Assembly: GCF_003918875.1 (NCBI RefSeq)
Contig: NW_025767079.1
Location: 5,022,001-5,086,000, forward strand
From: Haliotis rubra
Taxonomy: Eukaryota
Length of the DNA stretch: 64,000 nt
Direction of reading: 5' to 3'
Part shown: one piece after another, positions 6,949 to 50,982 of the stretch
Layout of the letters: each line of letters opens with the position of its first letter
Numbering within the stretch: the first letter of the stretch is position 1
Made by a program: the position numbers and the translations under genes
The notes under the pieces: generated by a model
The model's input: only the letters and a program-made list of their open reading frames with translations
What the model was told of the DNA's origin: nothing
Database searches by the model: none

Positions 6949-6960
6949 CGTGTATTGGAA

Positions 6961-20052: not shown

Positions 20053-20804
20053 TCACAGTGAACTGTTAATAAGACTTGTAGCGTACAGCTCAAGTACACA
20101 CTGAAAAACGCTTTCCCCATTTTTCAACATGTCCACACATATGGCGCCTGGCTTAGTTTCATGTTCCCAAAAGTCAAGTTCAATGGCATCTCCAAAATTG
20201 CATTCTTTTCTGTACCACATGAAAGCAGATTTAAGTTTTAACGGTTGTAACCCTAAGCCAGACTGGGTTGTCTGCCCTTTGACTAAACCTTCACAGCAAT
20301 ATTTCAAATAATTGGTAAAATGAACATGATGGTTTGCATCTATGTCGCTGTAAGACACTTGCCCTGCAAACACATTGCTTACACGTGATTGGTCAGATGG
20401 CCTCTCAAGAGCACTGAATCTCATTGGCTCGCCTGTGCACAAGTGCCCGTAGGTACTCTTCCATTGCTGGGGAATCTCGACAGGCTTTTTACTGCTTTTG
20501 TCGAGTATTATTGAATTACTTCGATACTTGACCAGTGGAACTGAACCGGATGTCATCACTGTGTCCATGACAATGGTGCTTTTGCCGACGTTGCTGACGG
20601 TGGTGTCTGTACACAGAGGGGCTTTCACAACAGCTTCGTCATGAAGCTGCTCGCTTAAGTCGATTTTTGCAGTCACTACAAACGCATCAGTTTCACCGAA
20701 AAGCTGGTGAAGGCCGAGAAACGACTTCCCGCCGTCTGTTGGATGTATGAGACAAATCTGGGTTGAATCTATGATGTCCATCACGCTCCATGGATGCGGA
20801 GATG
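20053..20804 (-). CDS. Double-HotDog acyl-ACP/acyl-CoA thioesterase-like protein, copy 1, main (last) exon
   Basis: VSYSDIDANHHVHFTNYLKYC resembles the acyl-ACP thioesterase SDxDxNxHVNNxxY motif; TVSNVGKSTI strand motif; YRKECNFGD; acceptor TTCGCAG at 20805. Confidence 0.85.
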
Positions 20805-20974
20805 CTGCGAATATGAAAGGACAATTGACATTACATTCCCTGTATTCTTTGTCTCAGTTAACCACACAAACACACACACACGCACATACACACGCACACA
20901 TATAACCCATGGAAGACATACAGGGTAATACAAACACGTCCGCCAGCGCCTGCGTGTACGAATTCACACATCTC

Positions 20975-21500
20975 ATCTCGTCATCTCACTGGTAACATCT
21001 AGACTCGACTATTGCAGCTCACCCCTAGAGGGCGCCACCAGAGTTCAGCTGTCGAAGTTGCAACGAGTGCAAAATGCAGCTGCTAGAATCGTAACCCGGA
21101 CCAAACCATCTGAACACATCACTCTAGTACTTAAGCAGCTCCACTGGCTACCCATCCAGCACAGAATAATGTTCAAAACTCTCTGCTTTGATTTCAAGGA
21201 TCTAACTGGTCAAGTGCGGCACTACATAACTGAACTGATTCAGCCATACATCCCTGCGAGAATATAACGATCCAAATACAAGTCACTGCTCGTGATCCCT
21301 CCAGTGAGAACGTCCAGCTACGGGAAGAGAACCTTCAAGTATGCTGCCGCAAAGACATGGAACGAACTGCCTGATTGTTTGAAAAACTGTTCAAATCTAC
21401 ATGACTTCAAACGAAGTCTCAAAACTTATCTCTTTAGACTGTCATATCCAGATGACTAGCTTCAGCTCAAGTGACTATGTTTTTAATTCTGTGCGCTTTG
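20975..21500 (+). mobile_element. L2-clade LINE 3' fragment in the thioesterase intron
   Basis: SRLDYC, LQRVQNAAARIVT, LKQLHWLPI, FKRSLKTYLF motifs; mirrored at 42520-43030. Confidence 0.85.
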
Positions 21501-21618
21501 AGAAGTTACTGTGAATGGAAATAGCGCGGTACAAATGGACTATAATAACATGTTCGCAAGCGTATGTACGCTCGCACGCACGCTCGCTCGCACTCAAGTA
21601 CAACGCGGAATCACTCAC

Positions 21619-21716
21619 CGTTTCCATGGAAGTTGGTATACGCGAGTCCAGGAACGATAACTCTACCACAATTAGTCGCCTTTATTATTCTCTCATACCC
21701 AAGCTGCTTAATAATT
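21619..21716 (-). CDS. Thioesterase copy 1, upstream coding exon (IIKQLGYERIIKATNCGRVIVPGLAYTNFHGN)
   Basis: TTTTCAG acceptor, G|GTGAGT donor; splices in frame (phase 1) to give ..FHGNASPHPWSVMDII..; identical in both arms. Confidence 0.75.
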
Positions 21717-22254
21717 CTGAAAATAGAGACAACACTTGAAAATAGAACATGAATTTATTTCGCAGCCTCTAGTGAAACTGGGGCGGTGGGGTGGTCATTT
21801 CTGGTGTCCCCCGCCATGATATTGCTGGAATATTGCTAAAGGCGGCGTAAAACTAAACTCACTCACCCCTGTGAAACTTAATTCAACATAGATCAATGTC
21901 ATTACACTCCAGTGAAATACTGATTTCTAAGTTTCAAAGGTATATATCTTAAAACTAATAAATACATGTTAGGTCACAAACATGATTTCACATTTCCTAA
22001 CAATGATGATAAGAAAAAAACAATACGATGGAAACAGACTGAGCATGTCCAATCAGCAAGAAATTCAAGTTATCTTTGCCACTTAAAAAGGGACGTTTAC
22101 TTCAGTGCGGTGTATTTGTATGTCTCGTGTTCTGCCTGAGTCAACTTCACTGGAATATCTACCTAAATAATCACACGTAAGTAAGTACAAAATAACTTAT
22201 AGCAGCTTGATCTAAGTCGCCAGGCTAGTGATCCAGCGAGATTGAGGTGCCGTT

Positions 22255-22530
22255 GGTATATGACCAGATGGTGGCCACATGAATACGCGCGAACGCCCAG
22301 TTGCGGGTACATCAACGAGCAGTAAACTTGGACTATGTGTCCCAGTCCACCCAGCTGTGAATGGGAACCTTGTAAGGATGGGAAAGCCACACTAACTTGG
22401 TGCGCCTCGTGCCCCAGTGCCGTTGAGATCGATATCCAATGATCGAGGGATCGAGGGAAAACAAAGCGCCTTTGAGCAGCTGAGCTGGATATCGGCGCCT
22501 TACAAATATTAGTATGATGATGATTATACC
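22255..22530 (+). mobile_element. SINE-like family D (CORE-like CCACCCAGCTGTGAATGGG, ATG-repeat tail)
   Basis: Mirrored, longer copy at 41330-41710. Confidence 0.55.
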
Positions 22531-22549
22531 AGCCCCATGAATTAGTGAG

Positions 22550-22947
22550 TGATAAATAGAGAATCTCACCCAAGTGTCTTCTGATATCAATTATATCAAC
22601 ACGAGTTGATAAAGTTACAAATATACGAGGCTTGCCGGGGATATTTTTACTTTTATCAACGAGTGTTGACATATTTTTGATGTCAGAAGACACGAGGGTG
22701 AGATTCTATTTATCATCCAAAATCACTCTTCATTAATTTTCAATGAAAAATGTACATCTCTGAACATGGTACTGCCATTAGACTTGCAGTGCAGCGATGT
22801 CATAGCATTGTGACGTCATCAAGTACATGACGTCATAGCATTGTCAGGGCATTGTACAAAATCTACTGTCAAAACGATATCTCCTAGGAGATATCGTTTG
22901 ATCTCAAACAAGCGATATCTCCTGTGGAACACAGTTTTTGATGATAA
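22550..22947. mobile_element. Long-hairpin non-autonomous element 1 (Crypton-like), left arm only
   Basis: Hairpin 22551-22714; bounded by TGATAA direct repeats; absent at the paralogous site near 41300. Confidence 0.7.
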
Positions 22948-23344
22948 TATACAATTATAGACTCTTGTAGAGGTCGATGTCGGTTTTTATTGACCTGAGA
23001 AAAACAATATCGACCAAGCTTGCGAGGTCGATATTGTTTTTCTCAGGTCAAAAAACCCCCGATATCGACCTCTACTAGAGTCTATAATCGTTTTATTATA
23101 TAATGAAAGAGAAACGGGTTTTAACATAAACTTTTAATGCACACACTGTGCCATCTATCCGAGTGATCTGACTGGCTGAAAAGCGGGGGAAGCCCCTTCG
23201 TACGGGATTCCTTGTCTATTTTTAGTAACCCAAGTCAATATCGTAATTTATCAGAAAACTCAAGTCAATATCGTGTTTTGTAGTCAATCATGTGACGGTA
23301 TTTTGACCAATCGTGGTACAGGAAAAATACTACCTATATAATAA
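22948..23344. mobile_element. Long-hairpin non-autonomous element 2 (Crypton-like), left arm only
   Basis: Hairpin 22954-23088; ends TATATAATAA; absent from the right arm. Confidence 0.7.
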
Positions 23345-23497
23345 TTAGTTTTACGCCACTTTCAGCAGTATTCAAAGAATATCACGGCGGGGTACACCAG
23401 ATATGGGCTTCACACATTGTACCCATGTGGGGAATCGAATCCGGCTTATCAGCGTCACGATCGAACACTTTAACCACTAAGCTACCCGACCGCCCCC
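23341..23497 (-). mobile_element. SINE family B copy
   Basis: Paralogous to 41147-41315; its tail is split by the hairpin elements. Confidence 0.85.
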
Positions 23498-26400
23498 GCC
23501 AGCAGCCTGAGTCATGAGCCGGTCAACAGCCTGGTATTGGTCAACTTGTCTCTGATGCATCATTGCTGATGAGTTGCGGTATACTGCAGTTAAAGTCATA
23601 AAGCTTGGCCATTAACCGGGGCACGACTCTGGTACCGGGTGGTCATGCTGCTTGACCAATTCTCTCAAGCTGCCGCCAAGCCATTGTTGTACGACTACTA
23701 TCATGTAGATGTACTAACATCATTAACAAAAGGTCAAGTGAAATACACAATGCCATTTAGAAAGTGGTCAAATGTAACATATGTTTTATTTGGGATTACA
23801 CTTTCAAAAAGGTCAAGTTGACCCTCGGATGCAGAGGGGCAATGCCCAACCGAAAGCATAGCCTGACATTCTACTAAAGCTAGGGGGTATTCCCGTGAAG
23901 TAGAATTCTGTTAATACATTCTTGATGTTGGTGTTGTTGTTCTAAGGGATTAAGTCACTGGGTGCTGTAAAATTCTGAACTATGTTGTGGAATATGATTT
24001 GAATTTACTGAGTTTGGCTCACTGAAATTATAACGATACTGATTAATGTGTCCACCCATTCAGTGCAATACAGTACGCTTACATGTCCTACATGTTATAT
24101 AAATACCATCAAGTTACAATGACTAGTATCATTTTCATTATGGCTCATGCACGATTCCAAGTTCGATTACAAGTTACATGTACAGAGTAAACAAGAGGAA
24201 AGCAGAGGAATGGATGTTCTGGCGATGCATCTCTAGAAAATTGAAACTGCTACAATGTCAACCATCGATGCTGTTGTATCAAATTACATTAGAAAACACG
24301 TATTCTGTTGTGTAGACGACAATTCACATATCAATTCTGTCATGAAATGAAATACCTAATGATTTCAATTCACTTCAGTTATCTGTCATCAAAAGAAATA
24401 TTTGATTGTTCTATTTTGCTGTTGTTGTCTGTTGTCAAAAGACGTCAAAGAACAAACAATGTCACGACACTATAGTAATATGAAAACAATAGTTCCTTGA
24501 AAAATGTTCATCGCCAGTTTGTGAGTATTATATACATGATACATATAGCTGAAACTACAGAGGCTGAATAAACGCCAACCATCTTCTATTTCTAATGAGG
24601 ACCATCAACTGGCCACTCCACAATATGGCATTCAGCGCGCCTGTTGACGATCTGCACAGTTGCATTCGCCTTTGCTTGGAAAGCCCTTATTATGTACTGA
24701 TAACATTTACATCAACTACGAATTATCTTTGTAACTGTTCCATAATCACCTTGATATTTGGCCCGTAGTCATATTTCAGGAGTGAAACCTTTGATGAAAT
24801 GTAACTTTCCCCCAGCGGTGTCAGTGGTTTGTTTCGAATCGAGCATCCGACTTGCGTTGAATCATTCGTGACCAAATCGTGTTATTCCGGGACAATCCGA
24901 ATACCATTCGTCACCACTCGTCCCGTGCCGTACCGCTATTCAGCTTGTGCCGGAATAACACAAGTTGGTCACAAATGGCCGAATACTCGCCTCTTATCTA
25001 CCTGCCGGAATGACACGAGTAGTTACGAATAGGCCGTATAACGAGGTCACTGAAACGGGTTATTTGGGACGAATGGCGCTCAACAAGCCTCCGGGAACCC
25101 ATGGGCAAGCGACAGCCTCCGACTGTTTCCGAATGAACGAAGTTGCACCTGTGTAAAGGCGATACTTTTTCGACACAGAATGAAGAGGAGTTCTATCCTG
25201 AATACCATATCAACATTCTCTAACACAACACAAACACATCTCTCACCACATCTATAGTTCTTGTCTAATGCTTAGTCTCTGAATATGTATAATTTTGATA
25301 GTAACAAACAAGACCATTTAAATTGAAAAGGAGCCCCAGGGAGACCAGAGATCCTGAAGCTGAAGAAATCTAGACTTGCTTTATTTAGGGCTTTAGCACT
25401 GCTGAGAGGGCTTGGCAGTAGGGAAAATCATGCGGTTCATGGACTGTGAGACAGGCTAGTATAGTTCCTACCTTTGTTTTGTTTTTTGTTTGTTGTGCAA
25501 CACATAAAGTCTGTACTAACATGCTGTTGTGTCAGAAAGACGTCAAGAATAATTGGCTAAATTCAAAAGACAATTTACCATATGAAATCATTTTTGATGT
25601 TTGATGTGACGGAGATTTGTCTGAATTTAAACAGCAAATAATATCGCTGGTTTCCCTCGGTCATTTAGCTGCGTCGTGAAAAGTCAGTCATCCGTGTGAC
25701 CTTCTCTGGCCGTCAAGCTTGGTTGCCCAAGCGAGATGTACGTTATTTTGAATGGTACCTTTTGAATGACCACTTGTCTACTTGATTCTACTATTTGACT
25801 GATCCATTATAAGAAATACTAGTAGGTATCAGCTTGAGGATTAGTTGTACACTGAACCAGAAATGGTGTTGTTTTAGGCTGTCTAAGATATGGCGGTCTA
25901 AGTTTTGGGAGGTTACCATCAGGGAATATCATGCGAGCACACAGCAAAGCTGTCTAGAAACTCAGACAAAAGCGTGCTAGACAAGCTCCAAACCCGACCA
26001 GTAGGTCTTTACGGAGAGTTGATCATGACTGTGTTTTGTTGTTGTTGAGTGTAAAGGTGTACGTAGGAGAAAGGGTTGTGTAGAGTGAGGCAGCGTAGAG
26101 TAGAGTCATATAAGGTAGTGTAAGTATGACAGACACAGTGTATTCTGTAAGTGTCGATGTTACGAGCGTTAATGAGTGTTGGCAGAGACCATATAATTAT
26201 ATGGTCTCTGGTATGGGATGTACATTTATTACCCACGTGGTCAACGTATGGCATACTAATCTCGTACGTCACACGAGTGTCGTATCGCGTTGACCTGTGT
26301 CGTAACGACTTGACCTGAAATACTAACGATTTGATTGGATAACCGATGACCTCTCAATTAGGTCACATTCTGACGTAACTATTTTTTTCATTCTTAACAA

Positions 26401-27436: not shown

Positions 27437-29432
27437 TTGTCACGTGCAAATGTCAGGCATACTCAAAAAAGCATATCCCTGATTGCACCATTACATAAGA
27501 ACACCATACTAGTACATTTTGCAGACAAAAGATCAAATGCACTCATAGACAAAGGCGCATCAATCAGCTGTATTAGTCAAAAACTTCTGAACAAAATAGG
27601 ATTAGGTGATGAAAAATTAGGCAAATCCCCCATTCATGAAGTGGTTGGATTTTGAGGCGAGAAACAACACATTTTAGGCACGATACAACTGTCATTTTCA
27701 ATAGGTCATTTAAAACTCTCACACTGTTTTAACGTCTTTGCAAAGTTGCACCATTCCCTTATCTTAGTAATGGACTTTCTTGAACACAACAAAGTTTCAG
27801 TAGACCTTGGCTCTCGAACCGTTTCTATTCATGACGGTTTAACCGTTGTTTCACTTGTACAAGCTAATACAGGTTTAGCTCGTGCATACAAACCATTCAC
27901 CATACCGCCCAGAAGACAAATGAACGTTCCAGTTAGAATTTCACGGAACATAGATGGCTCAGTGCTCTTACTGGAACCCACCCCAAATCTCACGACGCAC
28001 AAGCTGCAAGGTACTACGACGCCAAGGTAAAACCACATTTCGTTTATTAAACCCAACTAACAGCAACATTAGCATATCAGCTTGTACAGTTCTTGCTACA
28101 GTTAGTGAAGTGGACATCAATTCCATTCAAACTTTGCATGAGGCAGATGAGCAAATAGGCATTATGTCTATCTCCAGAACTCTCACCAATCAAGGTAAAT
28201 CTGCCAGAAATATTGACTTTGACCTTTCTTCTTCTGATCTTTCACCTCAACAAAGGAACCAACTAAACAATTTTCTTCAAGACAACAGAGATGTCTTTAC
28301 TGAAAACTGACAAGAACTTGGCAAAACCAGCTTGTACCACCACAAGATAGACACTGGTGATGCGAAACCCATTCGACTCCCGTTTTATAGACAGAATCCA
28401 GTAATTCGAAAGGAATGTGTCAGACAGGTACGGGACATGCTTGATGCAGGTATCATTGAGCCCAGTCGCTCAGATTGGAGAAGTCCTGTCGTCATGGTCA
28501 AGAAGAAATCGGGCGAATATCGATTTGCCGTAGATTTCAGAAAATTGAACAGTGTCACCCAGCCGGAATTCTTTCCTCTACCTCGTTTTGAAGATGTGGT
28601 GGACACTATTGGAGAATCTCAAGCTCGAATTTTCTCCGTTTTGGACTGTGCCAGCGGATTTTGGCAAATACCCATGGACCCCGACACAAAACACAAGTCA
28701 GCATTTATTACACCAGAGGGAGTCTTCCACTGGAATCGAATGCCTTTTTGGGTTGACCAATGCACCCATGTCCTTTCAAATGTTGATGACAGAAGTTCTG
28801 AGAGAGATGAACTGGAGACATGCACTAGTATATGTCGATGACATAATCATCTATTCCAGGAATTTCGGTGAACATCTGAAGCACCTTCAACAGGTGTTCC
28901 AGAAACTCCGGCAGGCAGGACTTACACTAAAGCCGAGTAAATGCAAGTTTGCTGAAAAGAAAGTTACCTATCTTGGTCACTTCTTCAGTAAGGATGGCAT
29001 TGAAGGGGACAAAAACAAAATAGAAGCAGTGAAGAGCATGCCAACGCCAAGAAATCAACAAGAGGTACGACAGTTCATTGGCCTTGCCAACTACTACAGG
29101 AAATTTGTTCAAGGGTTTTCACAAATTGCTGCACCTCTTAACCAGTTGCTGAGGAAAGAGATGGAGTTCAATTGGGATGAAAATTGTCAACATGCTTTGA
29201 TAAACTCAAAATTGCCCTTACATCTGCACCTGTTCTTGTGTACCCAGATGTAACAAAACCATTCATATTAACCACAGATGCAAGCGGGGCCAGTTTAGGC
29301 TATATTCTAGGACAGCTTAATGCCAAAGGAAATGAGCATGTGATTTCCTATGGTGGTAGATCCTTAAATGGAAGTGAAAGGAAATGGACAGTGACGGAAC
29401 TGGAATGTCTCGCTGTATCGGCACTGGTTTGA
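27437..29432 (+). mobile_element. Ty3/Gypsy pol pseudogene (protease-RT-RNase H), no integrase or LTR visible
   Basis: ALIDKGAS protease motif; HHKIDTGDAKPIR, SPVVMVKKK, VDFRKLN, LDCASGFWQI, YVDDII, LTTDAS, ELECLAV; several frameshifts and stops. Confidence 0.93.
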
Positions 29433-32982: not shown

Positions 32983-33155
32983 CTGACTAGTGACTGACTG
33001 AGTTTGGTTTTACGCCGCTTTTAGCAATATTCCAGCAATATCACGGCGGGGGACACCAGAAATGGGCTTCACTCATTGTACCCATGTGGGGATTCGAACC
33101 CGGGTCTTTGGCGCGACGAGCCAACGCTTTAACCACTAAACTACCCCACCGCCCC
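32983..33155 (-). mobile_element. SINE family B, full length
   Basis: TSD GTCCCCTGTAAGG on both sides. Confidence 0.9.
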
Positions 33156-33855: not shown

Positions 33856-34860
33856 TCACTTTGAATCGGAAGTTTCCGCACCCGCGAAAGGACGCCATTT
33901 TGGCATTCTGCTCAGGAATTCCTCGTCCTCATCAGAAGGCTCATAAGGTAGAACTCCAGCCAATTGCTGAGCTTCTACAGTAGTTGCGGATGGTGGCAGC
34001 TCAGATACAATTTTGATGCTCATCTCTCTTAGTCTTGGGGCTCTTTCTCTGAAGTAGCTGATACCATTGCATGGCCAGTGTTTTGTGAGCAGCATTTCCT
34101 TGTAAGCTCTCTGCTTCTTTTGAAGCGACACTTCGTCTGCCCATACTGCGGGCGCCATGCAAACAAACACCACAAAGCGCCATCTACCGGGATTCTTTCG
34201 ACGAATTAAGGGCCGAGTATTTGCATGGATAAGCCTGGAATCCCACACTACCATTCCCCCCTTCGGAACCGGAATTCGTTTTCGAAGACAGTTACAACGT
34301 TCTTTAAACCACTCGACGTCATCAGACCGGAAGTTTCGGACACGCCATGTTGGATTTGCTTTACGTTGTTCGACGGCATAGTCACATTCTTCATAATATC
34401 TATCAAAGAAATGATGAGACCCTTCAATGACCTCAAATGTCCAGTCATCCTGCGCACAGTGCTCAAGGTACACAGCTCCTTGGTATCCATGGAGCCCCAT
34501 CCTCGAAGAGTCCTGGTCTACGTGGAGCCAGTCCTGACTTGGAATGTAGAAATCCTCCTCCCCATCTTCTGGAGGACGCCCGATAGCGATTCCATCAAAA
34601 CTTGTCAATAACTTCTCAGTTCCCCATATTTGGGCGAAGACTGGTTTTGCTTTCATGCGCACTGCCCATGTTGGCTCCATATGACCGACTTTGAATTTCT
34701 GTATCAGGGATTTAGTGGTCGGAGGCCACGCCCCTTCAAACCCATTCAACCAATCATCGTACATGCCTCTGTATTTGTCGGCCTGTTCGGTTGTCAGAAC
34801 ATCCTGAATGACAGCGTAGCCCTTGGTCTCAAGATCTTTCCTGTTGCTCTCGGAAAACAT
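33856..34860 (-). CDS. PhyH-family Fe(II)/2-oxoglutarate dioxygenase, paralogue 1 (334 aa, soluble)
   Basis: N-terminal L-E-T-K-G-Y-A-V-I; WLHVDQ (HxD); YQGAVYL; GSH; PKGGMVVWDSRLIHAN (distal His); WRFVVFVCM (2OG Arg); Kozak-like CACCATG. Confidence 0.92.
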   Translation of the reverse strand: MFSESNRKDLETKGYAVIQDVLTTEQADKYRGMYDDWLNGFEGAWPPTTKSLIQKFKVGHMEPTWAVRMKAKPVFAQIWGTEKLLTSFDGIAIGRPPEDGEEDFYIPSQDWLHVDQDSSRMGLHGYQGAVYLEHCAQDDWTFEVIEGSHHFFDRYYEECDYAVEQRKANPTWRVRNFRSDDVEWFKERCNCLRKRIPVPKGGMVVWDSRLIHANTRPLIRRKNPGRWRFVVFVCMAPAVWADEVSLQKKQRAYKEMLLTKHWPCNGISYFRERAPRLREMSIKIVSELPPSATTVEAQQLAGVLPYEPSDEDEEFLSRMPKWRPFAGAETSDSK

Positions 34861-36210: not shown

Positions 36211-39200
36211 TTGTTATCGTGTTATTACACCACGGCTCTCAATTTACCTGGTGGTCTATATTTAGACCGTCACCGATAGCGGAAGAAACCGAGTTGAGCC
36301 GAGAGATTGCACCACCATCGTGAAAGTCATTCGTCACCACACGCCCCTTTCCGTAACCTCCAAGAAGATTCGTCTTGTCCCGGAATAACACGAGTTGGTC
36401 GCAAATGCGTGGAAATGTGTATTCTGCGCATGCGTACCGGTTTCAGAAAGGGGTTGTTTCAAAACGTTTTACAACAATATTTCCAAGTTGGTGGTCACGA
36501 TCAACTCGCGTACTGTAGCATTGAAGGCAGTTTGCTGCGCGGTGGTCGGGGTGTTGTTATGCCCCAAGTCACCCATATCCTGGTAAAGATACCCGCAAGA
36601 GCATAATTCGTCGCAGTCCTGTCCAAACCTCGTATCTGACTTTTATAATGTTTTGAGATAATCGGAAAAAATGTTTCATTTGTTTATGTGCAAACTTAAC
36701 ACAATGAGTTTTCAATCATAACTTTGCATCAATATTTGCAGTGAAACCAAACATGTTTGGCATCTCAATTCCCAAGCGTTAGGTCTGGATGAAAAATACG
36801 AGGTTTTGCATCAAGTCTATTATGAAATAGTATGTTTTGAAAAACAGGTAATTTCACTTAAGGTCACATGCAACCAAAAAATCAAACACAATTAAAACAC
36901 AATTATCACTTCTTCATGACATATAATATGCATTGCTGATTATGAAAAAACAAATAAACAAAATTATAAGCGTATAAACGCAAATCAAAAGTGCAATATT
37001 TTGTACTTGGGTTTACCTCCCAAGGAACGAAGCAGCCGGGATACCGACCCCAGTCAGAGCGGGTGGGTGTGCACTCAAGTGTAGCGGTTGGTTCATTTGC
37101 AGATGCCGCCCCCGCGGCTCATTGTGTGTGTATATATAGAGATGTTTGGTTTTGTAAATACATGCTCATTTTTTGTGTATAACATTTTGCAATCAACAGA
37201 CGTCATAACTTGTCATGTGTTCAAGTATCACACCTGCCTGTCTGTGTAATTACATAATGTGACAGAGACCGAACTCGGGCCATAAATCAATGCATTTTGT
37301 TTATGGTGTATAGCCTGATTGGTGTTACGTTCAAATTGCATGTGGTCAGTGATAGCAGCTGTGTATTGAATATTGTCATTAGAAGACAGGCAGGCAGACA
37401 CACAGGTGTCAATAAAACAAGACATTGAGTTTTGTCTGTGACAACGACATATCTATATCACAGTTAGAAATTGTGTCAACGCTAAATAATGACATTGCTT
37501 TTAGGTATCGAACTGAGAAAGTGACTCGGTAAGAAGAACGTGTGGTGAAATAGACAAATGAAATAATATAAACAGTTTATTTACTGTCATAACATATAAA
37601 AAGCTCGCACCTGTGAGCTATAAACAAAACATTATGAAAATAGCTCACACCAAAGCCTTCACCGAGTATTCACCAGACAGCCCGCTTCCAAGTTGCGCGA
37701 ACCTATTTCACTGAGCGCAGCCCAGCTGTTGAAACCCGTTTTCCGGCGAAATTTTCGACACTTTCATGTACCGCTGTACAGAAATATACGGCGCATCTGA
37801 CGTGAAAAAACATACAAACATATAGGGAGGGGGATAAAAAGGCAGTTGTATATTTCTATCTGCTTTAAGTTTACTTTGAAACTTGTTTTATAACGTGTAT
37901 TTTTAGTAATTCCTCTACTAATGTATCGACCATCTCTTATGCCTCTAAGTTAACACATCTATTGTTAGTTTTTCCCAACGAATGTTGTACATCCCACACT
38001 CATTAACGCTCGTAACATCACGTGACACTTACAGAATACACTTTCTGTCATACTTACACTACCTTATATGACTGATACTCTACGCTGCCTTATAACTCAC
38101 TCTACATAACCCTCTCTCCTACATAACACCATTACACTCAATAACAACAAAACAGAGTCATGATCAACATTGGGACAAGCTGCACTGGCAGGCGAACGTA
38201 GATGATCTCCGTAAAGACCTACTGGCCGGGTATGTATGGAGCATATCTAGCACGCTTTTGTCTGAGTTTGTTGACAGCTTTGTTGTGTGCTCGCATGATA
38301 TTCCCTGATGGTAACCTCCCAAAACTTAGACCGCCATATCTTAGACATCCTAAAACAACACAATTTCTGGTTGAGTGCACAGCTAATCCTCAAGCTGATA
38401 CCTATTTCTAATAATGGATCAGTTCGGTAGAATTCTGCACGTCAGCCCGTCGAGCTAGTCAGACAGTAACGTCTCGGCGTGGTAATTCAAAAGGTACCAT
38501 TCAAAATAACGTACATCTCGCTTGGGTAACCAAGCTTGACGGCCAGAGGTCACACGGATGACTGACTTTTCACGACGCAGAGTAAATGACCCGAGGGAAA
38601 CCAGCGATATTATTTGCTGTATAAATTTAGACAAATCTCCGTCACATCAAACATCATAAATGCTTTCATATGGTAAGTTTTGTTTTGAGTTTAGCCACAT
38701 TATTATTGACGTCTTTCTGACACAACAGCATGTTAGTACAGACTCCATGTGTTGCACAACAAACAAAAACAAAACAAAGATAGGAACTATAGTAGCCTGT
38801 CTCACAGTCCATGAACCGCATTATTTTCCCTACTGCCAAGACCTTTCTGCACTGCTTAAGCCCTAAATAAAGCAAGTCTCGATTTCCTCAGGTTCAGGAT
38901 CTCTGGTCTCCCTGGGGCTCCTTTTCAATTTAAATGGGGTTGTTTGTTACTATCAAAATTATACATATTCAGAGACTAAGCATTAGACAAGAACTATAGA
39001 TGTGGTGAGAGATGTGTTTGTGTTGTGTTAGAGAATGTTGATATGGTATTCAGGATAGAACTCATCTTCATTCTGTGTCGAAAAAGTATCGCCTTTACAC
39101 AGGTGCAACTTCGTTCATTCGGAAACAGTCGGAGGCTGTCGCTTGCCCATGGGTTCCCGGAGGCTTGTTGAGCGCCATTCGTCCCAAATAGCCCGTTTCA

Positions 39201-39896
39201 GTGACCTCGTTATACGGCCTATTCGTAACTACTCGTGTCATTCCGGCAGGTAGATAAGAGGCGAGTAGTTACAAATGTATTCGGCCATTTGTGACCAACT
39301 CGTGTTATTCCGGCACAAGCTAAATAGCGGTACGGCTACGGGACGAGTGGTGACGAATGGTATTCGGCTTGTCCCGGCATAACACCATTGGGTCACGAAT
39401 GATCCAACGCAAGTCGGAAGCTCGATTCAAACAAACCATTGACACAGCTGGGGGAAAGTTACATTTCATCAAAAGGTTTCACTCCTGAAAGATGACTACG
39501 GGCCAAATGTCAAGGTGATTATGGAACAGTAACAAAAATAATTCGTAGTTGATGTAAATGTTATCAGTACATAATACGGGCTTCCCAAGCAAAGGCGAAT
39601 GCAACTGTGTAGATCGTCAACAGGCGCGCTGAATGCCATATTGTGGAGTGTCCGGTTGATGGTCCTCATTAGAAATAGAAGATGGTTGGCGTTTATTCAG
39701 CCTCTGTAATTTCAGCTATATGTATCATGTATATAATACTCAAAAACTGGCGATGAACATTTTGCAATGAACTATTGTTTTCATATTACTATAGTGTCGT
39801 GACATTGTTTGTTCTTTGACGTCTTTTGACAACAGACAACAACAGCAAAATGGAACAGTCAAATATTTCTTTTGATGACAGATAATTACAGTAAAA

Positions 39897-40055
39897 CGAG
39901 TGAGTGTGGTTTTACGCCGCTTTTAGCAATATTCCAGCAATATCACGGCAGGTGACACCATAAATGGGCTCCACACATTGTGCCCATGTGGGGAATCGAA
40001 CCCGGGTCTTCAGCGTGACGAGCGAACGCTTTAACCACTAGGCTACCCCATCTCC
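39897..40055 (-). mobile_element. SINE family B, right arm only
   Basis: Empty site near 24375 in the left arm. Confidence 0.85.
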
Positions 40056-40682
40056 CGGAAGTAAAATGAAATCACCATGCTTCTTTTGATGACATAACTG
40101 AAATGAAATAAAAACATCACGGTTTTTATCTTCTTTTGCGTAGCATTGATCTGTGAATTGCCGTCTACACAACAGAATACGTGTTTGCTAGGGTAATTTG
40201 ATACAACAGCATTGATGGTTGACATTGTAGCAGTTTCAATTTTCTAGAGATGCATCGCCAGAACATCCATCCCTCTGCTTTCCTCTTGTTTACTCTATAC
40301 ATGTAACTTGTAATCGAACTCTCTTAACTGTGCATGAGACATTATGAAAATGATACTAGCCATTGTAACTTGATTGTACTTATACAATATGTAGGAAATG
40401 TAAGCGTACTGTATTACACTGAATGAGTGAACACATTAATCAGTATCATTATAATTTCAGTGAGCTAAACTCAGTAAATTCAAATCATATTCCACAACAT
40501 AGTTCAGAATTTTACAGCACCCAGTGACTTAATCCCTTAAAACAACACCGGCACAACATCAAGGATGTATTAACAGAATTCTACTTCACGGGAATACCCC
40601 CTAGCTTTAGTAGAATGTCAGGCTATGCTTTCGGTTGGGGATTGCCCTTCTGCATCTGAGAGTCCACTTGACCTTTTATAAC

Positions 40683-40851
40683 ATGTTATATTTGGGACTA
40701 CACTTTATTTGTAAAGTACAGATTCTAGTACTTTTGTTGGATTGAGTCCCATCCGGGATTCGAACCCACACCGAATCCCGGATGGGACTCAATCCAACAA
40801 AAGTACAAGAATCTGTACTTTACAAAGAAAGTGTAATCCCAAATAAAACAT
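40683..40851. repeat. ~80-bp-arm fold-back of a family E SINE
   Basis: TACTTTTGTTGGATTGAGTCCCATCCGGGATTCG, loop AACCCACAC, CGAATCCCGGATGGGACTCAATCCAACAAAAGTA. Confidence 0.9.
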
Positions 40852-42094
40852 ATGTTACATTTGACCACTTTCTAAATGGCATTGTGTATTTCACTTGACC
40901 TTTTGTTAAGGATGTTAGTACATCTACATGATAGTAGTCGAACAACAATGGCTTGGCGGCAGCTTGAGAGAATTGGTCAAGCAGCATGACCACCCGGTAC
41001 CAGAGTCGTGCCCCGGTTAATGGCCAAGCTTTATGACTTTAACTGCAGCATACCGCAACTCATCACCAATGATGCATCAGAGACAAGTTGACCATTAGCT
41101 ACCTTTAATACCAGGCTGTTGACTGGCTCATGACTCATGCTGCTGGCGGGTGCGGTCGGGTAGCTTAGTGGTTAAAGTGTTCGCTCGTGACGCCGATAAG
41201 CCGGGTTCGATTGCCCACATGGGTATTATATGTGAAGCCCATATCTGGTGTACCCCGCCGTGATATTCTTGGAATACTGCTAAAAGTGGCGTAAAACTAA
41301 TTATCACTCACTAACTCATGGGTCTGGTATAATCATCATCATACTAATATTTGTATAGCGCCCATATCCAGCTCAGCTGCTCAAAGGCGCTTTGTTTTCC
41401 CTCGATCATTGGATATCAATCTCAACGGCACTGGGGCACGAGGCGCACCAAGTTCGTGTGGCTTTCCCATCCTTACGAGGTACCCATTCACAGCTGGGTG
41501 GACTGGGACACATAGTCCAAGTTTACTGGGACACATAGTCCAACTTCTTTGCACGTTGCTGTACCCGCAACTGGGCGTTCGCGCGTATTCATGTGGCCAC
41601 CATTTGGTCATTTACCAACGGATTCGTGGGTTCTTTTAAGTGCGCAGGGCTTTGTACTGTACACTAGGGGTTGTGACAACACTGAAAGTGTCTGCACACA
41701 AGCTTGTCCCGGCACCTCAAGCTCGCTGGATCACTAGCCTGGCGACTTAGATCAAGCTTCTATAAGTTATTTTGTACTTATACTTACGTGTGATTATTTA
41801 TGTAGATATTCAAGTGAAGTTGACTCAGGCAGAACACGAGACATACAAAAACACCGCACTGAAGTAAACGTCCCTAAAGTGGCAAAGATAACTTGAATTT
41901 CTTGCTGATTGGACATGCTCAGTCTGTTTCCAACGAATTGGGTTTTTTCTTATCATCATTGTAAGGAAATGTGAAATCATGTTTGTGGCCTAACATATAT
42001 TTATTGGTTTTAAGATGTATACCTTTGAAACTTAGAAATCAGTATTTCACTGGAGTGTAATGGCATTTATCTATGTTGAATTAAGTTTCACTGG

Positions 42095-42240
42095 GGTGAG
42101 TGAGTTTAGTTTTACGCCGCATTTAGCAATATTCCAACAATATCACGGCGGGGGACACCAGAAATGGACTTTTCACATTGTACCCATGTGGGGAATCGAA
42201 CCCGGGTCTTAGGCGTGACTAGTGACTACCCCACCGCCCC
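42095..42240 (-). mobile_element. SINE family B copy
   Basis: Paralogous, internally deleted copy at 21780-21868. Confidence 0.85.
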
Positions 42241-42303
42241 AGTTTCACTAGAGGCTACGAAATAAATTCATGTTCTATTTTCAAGTATTGTCTCTATTTT
42301 CAG

Positions 42304-42401
42304 AATTATTAAGCAGCTTGGGTATGAGAGAATAATAAAGGCGACTAATTGTGGTAGAGTTATCGTTCCTGGACTCGCGTATACCAACTTCCATGGAAAC
42401 G
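42304..42401 (+). CDS. Thioesterase copy 2, upstream coding exon
   Basis: TTTTCAG|A..AACG|GTGAGT; in frame with the exon starting at 43192. Confidence 0.75.
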
Positions 42402-43191
42402 GTGAGTGATTCTGCGTTGTACTTGGGTGCGAGCGAGCGTGCGTGCGTACATACGCTTGCGAACATGTTATTATAGTCCATTTGTAAAGCGCTATTTCCA
42501 TTCACAGTAAATTCTCAAAGCGCACAGAATTAAAAACATAGTCACTTGAGCTGAAACTAGTCATCTGGATATGACAGTCTAAAGAGATAAGTTTTGAGAC
42601 TTCGTTTGAAGTCATGTAGATTTAAAAAGTTTTTCAAACATTCAGACAGTTCGTTCCATGTCTTTGCGGCAGCATACTTGAAGGTTTCTCACTGGAGGGA
42701 TCACAAGCAGTGACTTGGATTTGGATCGTAATGTTCTCACGAGATGTAGGGCTGAATCAGTTCAGTAATGTAGTGCGGCACTTGGCCAGTTAGACCCTTG
42801 AAAACAAAGCAGACGAGTTTTGAACATTATTCTGTGCTGGATGGGTAGCCAGTGGAGCTGCTTAAGTATTTGAGTGATATGTTCAAATGGTTTGATCCGG
42901 GTTACGATTCTGGCAGCTGCATTTTGCACTCGTTGCAACTTCGATAGCTGAACACTGGTGGCGCCCTCTAGGAGTGAGTTGCAATAGTCGAGTCCAGATG
43001 TTACCAGTGAGATGACGAGATGCGATGTGTGAATTCGTACACGCAGGCGCTGGCGGCCGTGTTTGTTTTACCCTGTATGTCTTCCATGGGTTATATGTGT
43101 GCGTGTGTACGTGCGTGTGTGTGTGTTTGTGTGGTTAATTGAGACAAAGAATACAGGGAAAGTAATGTCAATTGTCCTTTCATATTCGCAG

Positions 43192-43944
43192 CATCTCCGC
43201 ATCCATGGAGCGTGATGGACATCATAGATTCAACCCAGATTTGTCTCATACATCCAACAGACGGCGGGGAGTCGTTTCTCGGCCTTCACCAGCTCTTCGG
43301 TGAAACTGATGCGTTTGCAGTGACCGCAAAAATCGACTTAAGCGAGCAGCTTCATGACGAAGCTGTTGTGAAAGCCCCTCTGTGTACAGACACCACCGTC
43401 AGCAACGTCGGCAAAAGCACCATCGTCATGGACACAGTGATGAAATCCGGTTCAGTTCCACTGGTCAAGTATCGATGTAATTCAATAATACTCGACAGAA
43501 CCAGTAAAAAGCCTGTCGAGATTCCCCAGCAATGGAAGAGTACATACGGGCACTTCTGCACAGGCGAGCCATTGAGATTCAGTGCTCTTGAGAGGCCATC
43601 TGACCAATCACGTGTAAGCAATGTGTTTGCAGGGCAAGTGTCTTACAGCGACATAGATGCAAACCGTCATGTTCATTTTACCAATTATTTGAAATATTGC
43701 TGTGAAGGTTTAGTTAAAGTGCAGACAACCCAGTCTGGCTTAGGGTTGCAACCGTTAAAACTAAAATCTGCTTTCATGTGGTACAGAAAAGAATGCAATT
43801 TTGGAGATGCCATTGAACTTGACTTTTGGGAACATGAAACTAAGCCAGGCGCCATATGTGTGGACATGTTGAAAAATGGGGGAAAGCGTTTTTCAGTGTG
43901 TACTTGAGCTGTACGCTACAAGTCGTATTAACAGTTCACCGTGA
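43192..43944 (+). CDS. Double-HotDog thioesterase-like protein, copy 2, main exon; +1 frameshift near the C-terminus (ORF stops at 43907)
   Basis: 10 amino-acid differences from copy 1 over the first ~223 residues; G5 run at 43878-43882 versus G4 in copy 1. Confidence 0.8.
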
Positions 43945-44059
43945 AAAACAGGACTTAGATAATTTGAACAAAATGTTATTGCGAGGATAAATACAGGTAT
44001 GGTCTGGAATAGGCGTTCATGTTTCAAAACGTTACACCCAAGTAGGCAGCTTCGACCTG

Positions 44060-44225
44060 AGTGAGTGAGTATTTACACTGCTTTCAGGAATATTCCAGCA
44101 ATATCACGGCGGTGGACATCAGAAATGGGTTTCACACTTTGTACCCATGTAGGGAATCGAACCTGGATCTTCGGCGTGACGAGCGAACGCTTTGACCACA
44201 AGGTTACACCACCCCACCCCACCCA
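44060..44225 (-). mobile_element. SINE family B copy
   Basis: Paralogous, internally deleted copy at 19797-19935. Confidence 0.8.
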
Positions 44226-45965: not shown

Positions 45966-46100
45966 TTATATTGTATACCGGGAACACATGTAGGTTCATT
46001 CAACTGTTAAATGTTGAAAACATAATAACTGTTCTGTGGCACATAACATTTCGGAAATATAAGTCAGCCGAGGACCAGATATTTTTCCTGCTCACTGCCA

Positions 46101-46265: not shown

Positions 46266-47268
46266 TTTATAAATACTAGATGCAATATGGCTGAAAGTTC
46301 TCGTTAAAACATTCTCAGCGATTCTCGGTTCATCTATTATCTTTCAGAATGACCAAACGGTTTTTTTTCAATTCAATACACCCAGTAAAATTCGACAATT
46401 AAATTAAGACATAGCAGTTCGGTAATACCCGACACCGCTCTAACACCATATCCCGCCTAATTCCTGCACGGAGCAGTAAGTAATACTAACAAATAACCGT
46501 TAAGTGTGAATCATATACACATACAAAGGCAAGTCCTGTCCCCCAATCCTGTTGCTAATAGATATTTCACATCACCAAATTCTCATAATTGTTTTTAACT
46601 CTTGTCGACTCGTCTGAACACTCTTGTCGGGCTATTCTGAACACTCTTGTCGGGCTATTCTGAACAAACGGTTTGCCATAAACATTTAGTTGTGACCGAA
46701 GTGTCAATGCTTCGATTATCATTTGTTTATAATCGTGTCCACCGCCATACAGCTGGAATGTTGCTGTAAGCAGCGTAAAGCTAAACTCACTCACTCGCTC
46801 AACCGTGTCCAGAAGGTTGATAAACTCTTTCCTCATTCCTGTTACTGAAATTTGCAAATTATGAAAAGTTCAGTAATTAACAGGAACGAGGAAAGAGTCC
46901 TTTGCTCGATAGTTCATTGTATTTGTAAAGAACGATTTGACGTCAACACACTGAAATTCTAACAAGGATGTAACTGACACCAAATTCGGAACCAAAGTAA
47001 GTACTTTCTTCAGACAGAATAATTGTTTTTTATATAATTAAAAATTATATCCATCTATGTACGTGTGTTCATTTTTAGTTTTTCATATAGAATCCAGCGT
47101 ATTTCTCACTTCTCTTTGTCAGAGTATATTACGAAACGATAATGATTCATACGTAGGAACTGTTGTTGTAATACTCTCGGCAAAGTCTTGTTGACCGCCA
47201 TCGATATTCGACGCTGTGCGGAGCTAGGTCAATCGTCATTATTGACAGGTTGTATGAAGCTATGTGGA

Positions 47269-47410
47269 AGTCACGTGACTATCACATGAGTGGAACTATA
47301 TATAACCCCACAGTACTTATGCATGGACACTACGTTATCGATAAACATTCGTTAGGTCGGTGGTTTGACAGTGTTGTGATTCTACTACAAGTTTCTACTA
47401 CAAGGTAAGT
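47269..47410 (+). promoter_or_regulatory. Candidate promoter and non-coding first exon of dioxygenase 2
   Basis: Palindromic E-box AGTCACGTGACT (47269-47280), TATATATAA (47297-47305), AAG|GTAAGT donor at 47405, acceptor CTCTTCCAG at 49903. Confidence 0.6.
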
Positions 47411-48214
47411 TCTGATGTATATAATGAACAGCGTTGTACTAGTTAAATGTTAACTATGTCACTGAAAGTTGTCAGGTTTTTCATAAATCAATATTCCGCC
47501 TCACTGTGAGAAAGGATCCGTGGAGTGTGGATATGGTTATACAGAAATATATCTTCAAGGGGCTAACAAATGCATAGAAATTATTACACAAGCAATTGTG
47601 TCATACGACTTATAACTACGAAACGACTGTGAAATGTTTTATTGCCAGCGAGAGCGAGGACAATACATAATTTTGCACAAGTTTCGTATAAGTCGTATGA
47701 CACACACATGCGTGTGTAATAATTTCTTTATTATCCATTTTATTTATGTACACTTGTGCAGTAAAACACGGTAAGCATGTGACGGCCCTCTTCACTGACG
47801 TCACGATCATTTGTTTAATGACGTCACAGACGACGAAATACAGATGGTTGCTTGGCAAAAGGGATACGTGCACATGTGCACGTATGACACTGGTTATGTT
47901 TCACCATATGGGTAATAAACTCTTATATGTGTTCACCTTAAATACTGCGAGGTGCATAAGGATGTGCAATTTATACAGGGGGGTCGAGGATTTACAACCT
48001 GATTGACATCAAACCTTTCGGTCCGACTGGATATCTGTGAAAGAAAATGCTGAAAAACTGTTTTCGTTATTTATAACTAAAATAATCGTTCACTGGGCAT
48101 GCTAAAGGTTCTGAAAATCTTTGTTGTGGGTAAACAAACAGTGTCTGTCTCTATATCAGATATATTATTTATAATATACAAGTAAACGTAAAAAATTCAC
48201 ACAAATACCCCAGC

Positions 48215-48420
48215 CCCTGGAGATCCGGTGGCTATAATTCGTGTCCAGGCAGTTCGTTCCACAGCGATGGAGCACAAACACTGAAAGAACGCTTTCCATA
48301 AGAGGCTAGTCTATATAAAAAAGGAGTTTTCGATAAGAATTTGCTTTCAGATCGCAGCTGTCTTGGTGGTTTGTAGGGGCTTAGCAGTTCACTTAGATAT
48401 GCTGGTGCCATGCCATTAGG
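48215..48420 (-). mobile_element. L2-like LINE 3' fragment
   Basis: Minus strand reads GMAPAYLSELL and YGKRSFSVCAPSLWNELP. Confidence 0.65.
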
Positions 48421-48869
48421 CTATGTGTTCGTTGAGTCTATTTATTATGTGAGATCTGCTTATGGAACTTGTTTGTTTTGCTTGCTTATTGTTTAATGCC
48501 ACACTCAGCAATATTCCAGCTAAATGGCGGCGGTTTGTAAATAATCAAGTCTGGACCAGTGGACCAGTGATCAACAGCATGAGCATCGATATCGGCATAT
48601 TCACGGGTACTGAAGAACACGGGTAGGGATCAATAAGTGTTTAAATAGATATCAAGACGAATGTTGCTGCTCACGGGTAGACTGGTGTTAACTTTCAGGC
48701 CAAATTTAGGTTTAAGTGGTACCATAATAAACGGCATATTTTCAGCCTGATAGGAACTTGAAATTTGAGCTCTTCTGGATCTGAGAATATATATAATTCA
48801 TACAATTTGTAGACAGAGTTTAGAAAGAATGGAGTTTGTTTGTCTTACAGCCGCTTTGAACAGCATATC

Positions 48870-49263
48870 GCTTTTAACAATATTCCTGCAATATCACGGC
48901 GGGGGACACCAGAAATCTGTTTCACACATAGTACCCATATGGGAGATCGGGCCGGGCCTTCAGCGTGGTGACCGAATGCTTTAACCACTAGGCTAACACA
49001 CCGCCCCCATGACGACATAGATTCATCATGTTTGGTGTAGTGTTAAAACGTTTGGTTACTTCTGAATGTTCGTTGCACTCAGGAGACTAATATTCAAGGA
49101 GTGAATGAGTAAGGTGTTAAGCCGCATTCAGCAATATTCCAGCAATATCACGGCGGGGGATACCAGAAATGGGCTTCACACATTGGACCCATGTGGGGAA
49201 TGGAACCCTAGTCTTCGGCGTAATGAGCAAACGCTTTAGCCACAAGGCTACCCCTCCGCCCCC
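48870..49263 (-). mobile_element. Two family B SINE copies (48870-49008, 49098-49263)
   Basis: Family B body and head. Confidence 0.8.
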
Positions 49264-49923
49264 TCATCTTCAAGGAATATTTACGACCGGTTGTAAATAG
49301 CTGAACCTGGGTCAGACAAACCAGGATTGATAAAGTATGAAAATGACCGCAAATGGAATACGATGACATTCAGTAAAGTCGCAGAACTTGACTACCGGAT
49401 GGCCATATTTATTTACTCTTGTGAGTAGGTGAAAAAGGTTTTGTGTAGCTTTTAGAAATATTCAAGCAATATCACGACTGGAAACAGCAAAAATGGGCTT
49501 CACATATTGTTCCTATCTGGAGAATCTAACCTGATTGTTGGGGGACGCCAGAGGTCATACAGACCCTGAAACAAACATATCCAAGAAAGCCATGCAGGTC
49601 TAGATTATGTCGCAAATCTGAAAATGAAGAAAGTCTCAGGGCCCCTTTTCATCATATTTTTTATTATGAACTGTTTTTTTCGTAAAATATAGAGACTAGT
49701 AGTTAGTCTACCTAGTGGGTAATCAAACCCGGGTCTTAGACGTGATGAGTGGACGCTCCAACCACTAGGTTACCACACCGGGGCTCTTATGACTAACAAC
49801 CATGAGTAATGAGGACCTATACTGTTGCCAAAAATTATAACGACTGCTTCTGAACATAATATGGTGGTAGTAATATGACGGTGCGTTCTCCATTCTCTTC
49901 CAGGTATCCGCTGAGACTGAAAA

Positions 49924-50982
49924 ATGCCGCCCACGGTAGACATATCCGAGCTGGAGAGTAAAGGTTACACTGTTGTGAAAGACGTGATGTCCCCAGACGA
50001 CTGTGACAGGTACATCAACATCTACAGACAGTGGCTTGCACAGTTCAATGATTCGTGGCCAATATCAAGCAACTCTCTGATCCAACGATACCAAATCGGT
50101 CACATGGAGCCTTCCTGGGGAAGCCGCCTCAAGGCCAAGAAGGTCTTCGAGCAGATATGGGGCACTGACCAACTTCTGACAAGCTTTGATGCAGTTGCAA
50201 TTGGGCGGCCACCTGAAGATGGCGAGGAGACGTTTGCCGTCCCTGGAAAGCATTGGCTCCATTGTGATCAGGGAGTAGAGCGAGTTGGGCTCCACGCCTA
50301 CCAAGGAGCCGTGTATTTAGAGGCTGCTGATGAGGATGACTGGACGTTCGAGGTTCTGGAAGGATCGCATGTGTTGCACAGTGATTTCTTTGAAGCTTCT
50401 CCAAGAGCGAAGATGAGAAGCATCACCAACAAGTTCTATGGGCTTACAGATGCAGACGTGGAGTGGTACACTGCGCACAATGGAGTTACACGCCGAAGGG
50501 TGCCAGCACCTAAAGGAGGGATGATCATATGGGATTCAAGACTCATCCATGCAAATGTTCGACCAAAGGAAAACAGACGCAAAACTGGAAGATGGAGATA
50601 CGTTGTGTTTGTTTCCATGGGCCCGACCGTTTGGGCTGGTAAGCAATATCTCAGACAGAAGAAGCAGGCATACCAAGGAATGAGGATGACATCCCACTGG
50701 CCCTGTAATGGGCTGGCAATGTTCTCGTATATGGAAGTAGGTGGGCCCATGGCAATAGACAAGCTACCAATCATAGCCTGCACAGACGATGCTAAACGTT
50801 TGGCAGGGGTTCTGTCCTATCCAGGCCCAAAGAAGGGACCGTCATGGAGGCCTCAATGGGCAGAGGGCAGCAAGGAAGGACATGAGCAGACAAGGTGGCT
50901 GACTCCACTATGGGTGGTACTGGGTGTTGCCGCGATATCCCTTGTCACTGCTCTTTCTGTGAAAAGAACTCTCATGAGATAA
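49924..50982 (+). CDS. PhyH-family Fe(II)/2-oxoglutarate dioxygenase, paralogue 2 (352 aa, C-terminal transmembrane anchor)
   Basis: LESKGYTVV; WLHCDQ; YQGAVYL; GSH; PKGGMIIWDSRLIHAN; WRYVVFVSM; C-terminal LWVVLGVAAISLVTALSV followed by KRTLMR; AATAAA at 51142. Confidence 0.92.
   Translation: MPPTVDISELESKGYTVVKDVMSPDDCDRYINIYRQWLAQFNDSWPISSNSLIQRYQIGHMEPSWGSRLKAKKVFEQIWGTDQLLTSFDAVAIGRPPEDGEETFAVPGKHWLHCDQGVERVGLHAYQGAVYLEAADEDDWTFEVLEGSHVLHSDFFEASPRAKMRSITNKFYGLTDADVEWYTAHNGVTRRRVPAPKGGMIIWDSRLIHANVRPKENRRKTGRWRYVVFVSMGPTVWAGKQYLRQKKQAYQGMRMTSHWPCNGLAMFSYMEVGGPMAIDKLPIIACTDDAKRLAGVLSYPGPKKGPSWRPQWAEGSKEGHEQTRWLTPLWVVLGVAAISLVTALSVKRTLMR

Follow-up and report, generated by a model that had tools for sequence, protein, structure and literature searches.

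A 64,000-nucleotide stretch of the genome of the blacklip abalone, Haliotis rubra (GCA_003918875.1, contig QXJH01000004.1; record position = window position + 5,022,000), hereafter the window, carries two genes for FatA/FatB-type thioesterases, TE-A and TE-B, together with two genes for PhyH-like Fe(II)/2-oxoglutarate (2OG) dioxygenases, PhyH-1 and PhyH-2. The linkage of the two families is real and inherited within abalones. Its best explanation, which we hold to be probable, is a Haliotis-specific, duplication-prone neighbourhood in which two multi-copy enzyme families have become interleaved; the thioesterase and PhyH proteins most likely act independently, on separate lipid-like or small-molecule substrates. 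A preliminary description of this DNA had proposed a clustered pathway of hydroxylation followed by release of the acyl group. The linkage that it rested on holds at the level of the genus, but the predicted compartments of the enzymes differ, the adjacency is conserved no further than background collinearity would give, and the putative RNA runs holding the two kinds of gene barely overlap. We therefore treat the locus as a reasonable, low-cost candidate for an animal gene bundle and not yet as an example of one.

All four open reading frames (ORFs) on which the preliminary description was built were found where it had placed them, and its assignment of both enzyme families was correct, as judged by Pfam matches and the thioesterase fold. 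The two thioesterase ORFs, at 20053-20784(-) and 43212-43907(+), score 25.6 and 26.2 bits with Acyl-ACP_TE_C (PF20791), whose cut-off is 21, and also match 4HBT_2 weakly; they are real, but each is only the third exon of a three-exon gene. Using tblastn with P0121 and P0122 and reading of the junctions, TE-A (20053..24772, minus strand) was resolved into coding exons at 24772-24750, 21716-21619 and 20804-20053. Its spliced translation of 290 amino acids has no internal stop and ends in -SSL, as an intact FatA/FatB-type double-hotdog thioesterase. TE-B (39492..43907, plus strand; RefSeq LOC124287171, P0121), resolved in the same way, has coding exons at 39492-39514, 42304-42401 and 43192-43907 and encodes 278 amino acids. 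The introns of both genes are GT-AG, and Haliotis homologues range from 278 to 292 amino acids. In the putative RNA run X1, a contig runs through thioesterase exon 3 as far as its boundary and from there goes on in exon 2; the thioesterase gene is therefore transcribed and spliced.

TE-A and TE-B lie on the two arms of an inverted segmental duplication, detected by self-blastn and a repeat search. The left arm (19817..25773, with TE-A) and the right arm (38479..44175, with TE-B) align in inverted orientation (19817-25773 against 44175-38479) at 87-97% identity, and it is the right arm that shows collinearity with other Haliotis species. The coding dS (synonymous substitutions per synonymous site) between TE-A and TE-B is 0.049, comparable to the 0.055 between the H. 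cracherodii and H. rufescens orthologues. The two thus appear, from their sequences, to be one gene that underwent a recent inverted duplication and not independent members of the locus, so that the 'two plus two' pattern described earlier is overstated even though four genes are present. One extra G distinguishes TE-B, which has a run of five at 43878-43882 where TE-A has four; the resulting frameshift costs the last ~17 residues, so that TE-B lacks both the -SSL tail and the final beta-strand of its second hotdog domain. The spacer between the arms is unique and 12.7 kb long, and holds PhyH-1 and a frameshifted retrotransposon fragment with reverse transcriptase and RNase H domains. This long terminal repeat (LTR) retrotransposon pol fragment (27437..29432, plus strand; RVT_1 and RT_RNaseH_2 on three overlapping ORFs in different frames), which we take to be of Ty3/gypsy type, belongs to no pathway. 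No other gene was called between 23.8 and 44.8 kb besides those named, and what else lies there is debris of satellites and retroelements. A satellite with a 68-bp period also occurs at 15.3-19.7 kb and 44.3-46.1 kb, in inverted orientation and with units ~90% identical; these arrays are outward extensions of the two duplicated arms.

An artefact of assembly, or a structural variant specific to one haplotype, could explain part of this pattern; we consider this quite improbable. In its specific form, only the thioesterase gene at the TE-B position, collinear with other species, would be real, a proposition to which we give equally little credence; nor do we put more weight on an origin of the TE-A arm and the TE-B frameshift in haplotype mis-joining or homopolymer error. 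The evidence that favours such an artefact comes largely from X10, a DNA run labelled as the same species. It shows a single exon-3 sequence that matches neither TE-A nor TE-B, its contigs stop aligning at the arm boundaries 24379 and 25773, and it contains just 47-62% of the 31-mers of the window. The TE-B frameshift, moreover, falls in a G homopolymer. However, the two arms show differences of 3-13%, indels among them, and are set apart by a 12.7-kb gene-bearing spacer, unlike a fold-back read artefact; contigs show presence and not absence; and thioesterase copy number varies in other Haliotis species too. The exon 3 of X10 also has an 11-nt deletion at 20069-20079 that, as read, leads to an early stop and the loss of the last eight residues including -SSL, and H. 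asinina P0126 is likewise without -SSL; the tail is therefore variable. The H. rubra thioesterase may thus be polymorphic in its copy number and its C-terminal tail, or else flaws in the assembly may be the cause.

The two dioxygenase genes are intronless. PhyH-1 (33856..34860, minus strand; P0050) encodes a predicted soluble protein of 334 amino acids and, from its place in the unique spacer, stands head-to-head with TE-B, the start codons being 4.6 kb apart. PhyH-2 (49924..50982, plus strand; P0001) encodes 352 amino acids with a predicted C-terminal tail-anchor helix and lies on the same strand as TE-B, 6.0 kb downstream. At 48% identity, the two are old paralogues. Adjacent non-homologous enzyme genes of these two families are thus found within 31 kb, and again 67-90 kb away. 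There, to the left of the window, H. rubra has a second arrangement, hereafter the trio (L006:1-12823), consisting of a thioesterase-like gene (-), a 369-amino-acid PhyH gene (-) and a thioesterase gene (+), followed by DDOST. The PhyH protein of the trio is predicted to be tail-anchored, and its gene is head-to-head with the second thioesterase, 3.3-3.5 kb apart in H. rubra and H. asinina, the latter of which has the same trio next to DDOST (L009).

Comparison of loci across molluscs, as the preliminary description had suggested, gave a divided answer: three or four Haliotis species keep the linkage, which turns up again at the neighbouring locus, but beyond the genus it was not seen at the loci sampled, so that absence from related genomes, which that description had named as a refutation, holds there. 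In H. cracherodii (L003), three same-strand thioesterase copies, of which the first and third are apparently frameshifted, are followed ~6.8 kb downstream by the PhyH-2 orthologue. In H. rufescens (L005), two thioesterase copies are followed by the PhyH-2 orthologue ~5 kb downstream. The orthologues (85% identity) thus hold the same position as PhyH-2 in both species. Outside Haliotis, linkage is absent at the sampled Lottia, Aplysia and Gigantopelta loci. The Lottia thioesterase sits among kinase, FHA and kinesin genes with no PhyH gene within 10 kb, the Aplysia thioesterase also has no PhyH gene within 10 kb, and the Gigantopelta PhyH-2 orthologue (P0003) lies between SGL and LRR genes with no thioesterase within 10 kb. 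Linkage is also absent at a paralogous locus within the genus, that of H. rufescens P0123, where the thioesterase is flanked by proteasome genes. The non-coding flanks are also collinear between Haliotis species; an adjacency conserved among them is thus what one would expect by default, and is no sign of selection.

In the thioesterase tree, a single clade made up only of Haliotis sequences (support 91/94) takes in every PhyH-linked copy; within it, the window thioesterases are nested among P0123-type genes, and the trio thioesterase branches as sister to these together. The PhyH tree places PhyH-2 next to its sister, Gigantopelta P0003, which itself has no thioesterase neighbour, and PhyH-1 is the long-branch sister of a Haliotis clade of L006-type and P0039-type genes that holds the trio PhyH. 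Given these positions, the adjacency of thioesterase and PhyH-2 was therefore not copied from the trio. A duplication en bloc giving TE-B and PhyH-2 was also considered and rejected, as the PhyH-2 clade predates the split of Haliotis and Gigantopelta and the thioesterases form a Haliotis-only clade. It is possible that the head-to-head pair of PhyH-1 and thioesterase was duplicated once, given the similar pair in the trio. We infer that a thioesterase gene may have landed among resident PhyH genes in the Haliotis lineage, and that local tandem and inverted duplications would then have multiplied the thioesterase-PhyH adjacency.

Between H. rubra and H. cracherodii, dS is 0.37 for the thioesterase and 0.39 for PhyH-2, and the adjacency of the two therefore predates the split of these species. 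The ratio of nonsynonymous to synonymous substitution rates (dN/dS) lies at 0.30-0.33 in the thioesterase, and in PhyH-2 at 0.20. Purifying selection acts on all genes, except possibly TE-B, and they therefore encode functional enzymes.

Several observations weigh against the explanation by a merely duplication-prone neighbourhood. The two sub-loci are made of deeply diverged paralogues, with thioesterases only 30% identical and PhyH genes 46-57%, and the adjacency has outlasted heavy local rearrangement, with a tandem arrangement in two species and an inverted one in H. rubra. Diverged paralogues with a surviving adjacency would also fit selection for co-location. The head-to-head arrangement of PhyH and thioesterase, both here (PhyH-1/TE-B) and in the trio, hints at a shared regulatory region. 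In addition, 8 of the 13 listed differences of the X10 exon 3 from TE-A are common to TE-B, a mixture of the two copies that makes the H. rubra copy number uncertain.

An alternative is that the locus is a true animal metabolic gene cluster or 'gene bundle', in which a PhyH-like enzyme hydroxylates an acyl-thioester and the linked thioesterase releases the product; we think this rather unlikely. The substrate could be, for example, an acyl-CoA, or an acyl group on a carrier protein through sulfur, as in carrier-tethered bacterial PhyH-type enzymes, and the product could derive, for example, from branched lipids of algae, or from some specialised lipid or polyketide. Among animals, gene bundles are by now a recognised class that keeps growing, including mollusc bur-ox, sponge oroidin and octocoral terpene clusters (PMC11869996, PMC12833800). 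The abalone locus resembles them in having adjoining non-homologous enzyme genes whose arrangement is conserved among related species, and Fe/2OG dioxygenases are among the most frequent co-occurring domains in such clusters (PMC11869996, PMC12833800). The two families adjoin at two sub-loci in four Haliotis species, and recruitment to a new role would be expected to leave what is seen in the PhyH-linked thioesterases, a clade that is lineage-specific and diverges fast. The purifying selection noted above and the apparently intact thioesterase catalytic residues (see below) are in keeping with this, and product release by mollusc polyketide synthases that resemble fatty acid synthases (FAS-like) is still unexplained (PMC10515154).

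On the other side, the locus differs from the known bundles in having just two enzyme families and no scaffold-forming enzyme: neither the ORF list nor the gene calls revealed a scaffold-forming core gene in the window. Its linkage is confined to Haliotis among the genomes sampled, being absent from the Lottia, Aplysia and Gigantopelta homologues and from the paralogous Haliotis thioesterase locus, with conservation inside the genus no greater than background collinearity. In a public-run index, parts of thioesterase exon 3 were present in putative RNA runs X1-X9 and PhyH-2 in X17-X28, with X2 the only run holding both; within study P1, the thioesterase runs differ from the PhyH-2 runs. As the index consists of contigs with small word shares and gives presence but not levels, this low overlap counts weakly against tight co-expression of thioesterase and PhyH. 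A search of the literature found no paper on either family in molluscs, nor on thioesterase-PhyH clusters in animals.

For the thioesterase, 76 relatives were aligned from an exhaustive profile search. An AlphaFold2 model built with just 7 Haliotis sequences had a pLDDT (predicted local distance difference test) of 58.7 and was set aside for one built on the 76-sequence alignment, with a pLDDT of 94.4 and a pTM (predicted template modelling score) of 0.91. This model has a tandem double-hotdog fold, which, with the Foldseek search, bears out the earlier double-HotDog call. FatA/FatB or bacterial acyl-ACP (acyl carrier protein) thioesterases account for every one of the top ~44 Foldseek matches, including 5x04, 2ess, 8qs0, 7hqx, 4gak and 2own, with template modelling (TM) scores of 0.62-0.77 and E-values down to 4.6e-16; TesB and LnmK rank below them, a TesB-type chain appearing at rank 45 with a TM score of 0.49. 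The family profile likewise finds Umbellularia FatB (UcFatB, 5x04) among PDB sequences at E 1.2e-10. The motif D-x-D197-x-N199-x-H201 (D197-A-N199-R-H201) aligns with D-L-D-V-N-Q-H of UcFatB 5x04, and the Y-R-K-E242-C stretch aligns with an A-E-S stretch of 2ess. D197 and H201 are each conserved in 74 of the 76 relatives and E242 in 69. We presume D197, N199, H201 and the downstream E242 to be catalytic, as their counterparts are in FatB.

FatA/FatB acyl-ACP thioesterases (PF01643 + PF20791; Umbellularia FatB 5x04, Arabidopsis FatA 9hrr, Bacteroides 2ess) are the closest known system for this enzyme. They share with the abalone protein the double-hotdog fold, a similar length (~290 amino acids in abalone), the D-x-N-x-H motif at the start of hotdog 2 and the glutamate of the downstream Y-R-x-E-C. 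The abalone protein differs in being from an animal, in its 11-18% identity, in the lack of a plastid transit peptide and in its N-terminal domain: PF01643 was undetected in the window proteins and weak in 3 of the 76 relatives, whereas the C-terminal PF20791 scores above its cut-off. At the FatB Asn, the family consensus is Tyr (40 of 76 members), but the Haliotis copies here retain Asn. An NCBIfam scan of the thioesterase gave weak YbgC-type matches only. The family was found in gastropods, bivalves and Branchiostoma (amphioxus), and also includes an H. rubra paralogue (P0127) and a thioesterase array in Bradybaena (P0133). To our knowledge, the FatA/FatB-type fold is otherwise characterised in plants and bacteria only.

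A further difference from FatA/FatB concerns localisation. A canonical peroxisomal targeting signal type 1 (PTS1), [SAC][KRH][LMI], ends 44 of 156 members of the thioesterase family (28%), and a relaxed form ends 75 of 156. The family looks ancestrally peroxisomal, and the -SSL tail of the window thioesterase would be a weak or degenerate variant of PTS1. These PTS1-type ends therefore make acyl-CoAs, rather than acyl-ACP, the likely substrates; no ACP is known in peroxisomes. A PTS2-like motif at the thioesterase N-terminus was compared by eye with the consensus and did not fit. ACOT8 is a mammalian peroxisomal thioesterase of the hotdog fold with a C-terminal PTS1 of the -SKL type that presumably acts on acyl-CoA. 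It would be a functional analogue, yet belongs to the TesB-like hotdog subfamily, whereas the abalone thioesterase is FatA/FatB-like.

For the dioxygenases, the match to PhyH (PF05721) lies at the family threshold, with PhyH-1 at 20.9 bits, just under the cut-off of 22, and PhyH-2 at 22.6 bits, above it. The match spans positions 2-201 of the 213-position model, and PF05721 is matched by all 43 aligned relatives at E <= 0.01 (best E 1.2e-10), 12 of which additionally match Gig2-like PF07350. In this 43-sequence alignment, which includes both window proteins, H113, H209, R218, R223 and R225 are invariant and D115 is conserved in at least 90%; PhyH-1 retains all invariant columns, the His and Arg positions included. 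These positions, assigned by motif and not by structure, fit a His-x-Asp...His iron triad and a 2OG-binding Arg; a double-stranded beta-helix, the fold of the PhyH family, is presumed. An NCBIfam scan of the PhyH proteins found nothing, and the family profile drew no match from the PDB sequences with the limit raised to E = 10; that PDB search yielded no relative with a known substrate. The latter result counts against a gene bundle and bears on the premise, taken as established in the preliminary description, that PhyH-family enzymes act on acyl-thioesters. The premise is an over-generalisation for window proteins that lie at the family threshold and have no PDB sequence relative; the Pfam PhyH family also includes amino-acid hydroxylases, ectoine hydroxylases and halogenases.

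Hundreds of PhyH homologues occur in molluscs, the annelid Owenia and Lingula, each genome having several, and they appear to represent a lophotrochozoan-wide, intronless, multi-copy expansion. The sole closer relative of PhyH-1 is a Logan fragment, 83% identical. A hydrophobic C-terminal 19-mer followed by basic residues occurs in 50 of 145 PhyH relatives; this tail anchor is found in PhyH-2 and most listed relatives of ~350 amino acids or longer, but not in PhyH-1 or the ~330-residue forms. It would put the catalytic domain of PhyH-2 on the cytosolic face of a membrane. None of the 145 relatives has a canonical PTS1, and neither PTS2 nor PTS1 was evident in the PhyH termini read. Compared with human PHYH (phytanoyl-CoA 2-hydroxylase) and the wider Pfam family, the abalone proteins are alike in the profile match, the H-x-D...H triad and the downstream arginines. 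They are unlike it in scoring at the threshold with no match to a solved structure, in showing a C-terminal tail anchor (PhyH-2 and many relatives) instead of an evident PTS2 or PTS1, and in belonging to an intronless family that is multi-copy in lophotrochozoans and partly matches PF07350. As a separate observation, a giant-virus contig (Nucleocytoviricota metagenome-assembled genome, IMG/VR; L011:8001-8699) encodes a PhyH-like protein with 29-31% identity to PhyH-1 and PhyH-2, and a mostly viral cluster is among the nearest neighbours listed in a protein atlas. No thioesterase was found near the viral homologue at the one giant-virus locus checked.

Taken by their termini, the enzymes would thus differ in localisation, with a PTS1-type thioesterase family, a tail-anchored PhyH-2 and a soluble PhyH-1. 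A PTS1-type thioesterase and a tail-anchored PhyH-2 are predicted to lie on different sides of a membrane, which argues against a bundle. Should the enzymes be coupled after all, they might form an abalone lineage-specific lipid-tailoring bundle, in which FatA/FatB-type thioesterases were recruited beside PhyH-like enzymes to process the same acyl-thioester; we regard this more specific proposal as unlikely, a shade more so than a gene bundle in general. It could possibly serve to hydroxylate branched-chain acids of algal origin at the alpha or beta position and release them or, alternatively, to release the products of thioesterase-less mollusc FAS-like polyketide synthases, with oxidation to follow. 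If coupled, the locus would join the few gene bundles known in animals as a small, tractable and non-canonical one, and two large mollusc enzyme families that are so far uncharacterised would gain their first function. Even uncoupled, it indicates that animals (molluscs and amphioxus) carry a FatA/FatB-type double-hotdog family, often with a peroxisomal signal, and that the lophotrochozoan PhyH-like expansion is largely tail-anchored. It also cautions that a genus-limited adjacency in a freely duplicating region should not be taken as a pathway.

Other elements occur in the window. A 568-amino-acid ORF with C2H2 zinc fingers at 6955-8661 (+) contains an internal 612-bp tandem duplication of 98% identity (6979-7590 against 7588-8199). 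At 10933-12087 (-), two adjoining ORFs with HTH and DDE_3 domains resemble a disrupted Tc1/mariner-type transposase. Positions 56700-58430, in an AT-rich stretch at 54-58 kb, are taken up by a tandem array that repeats every ~95 bp, with units 75-82% identical. Finally, a dispersed 178-nt repeat is present in nine copies with 63-94% identity (2970-3147 and eight others, e.g. at 32989, 39891, 49096 and 62919) and is probably a SINE-like (short interspersed nuclear element-like) element.

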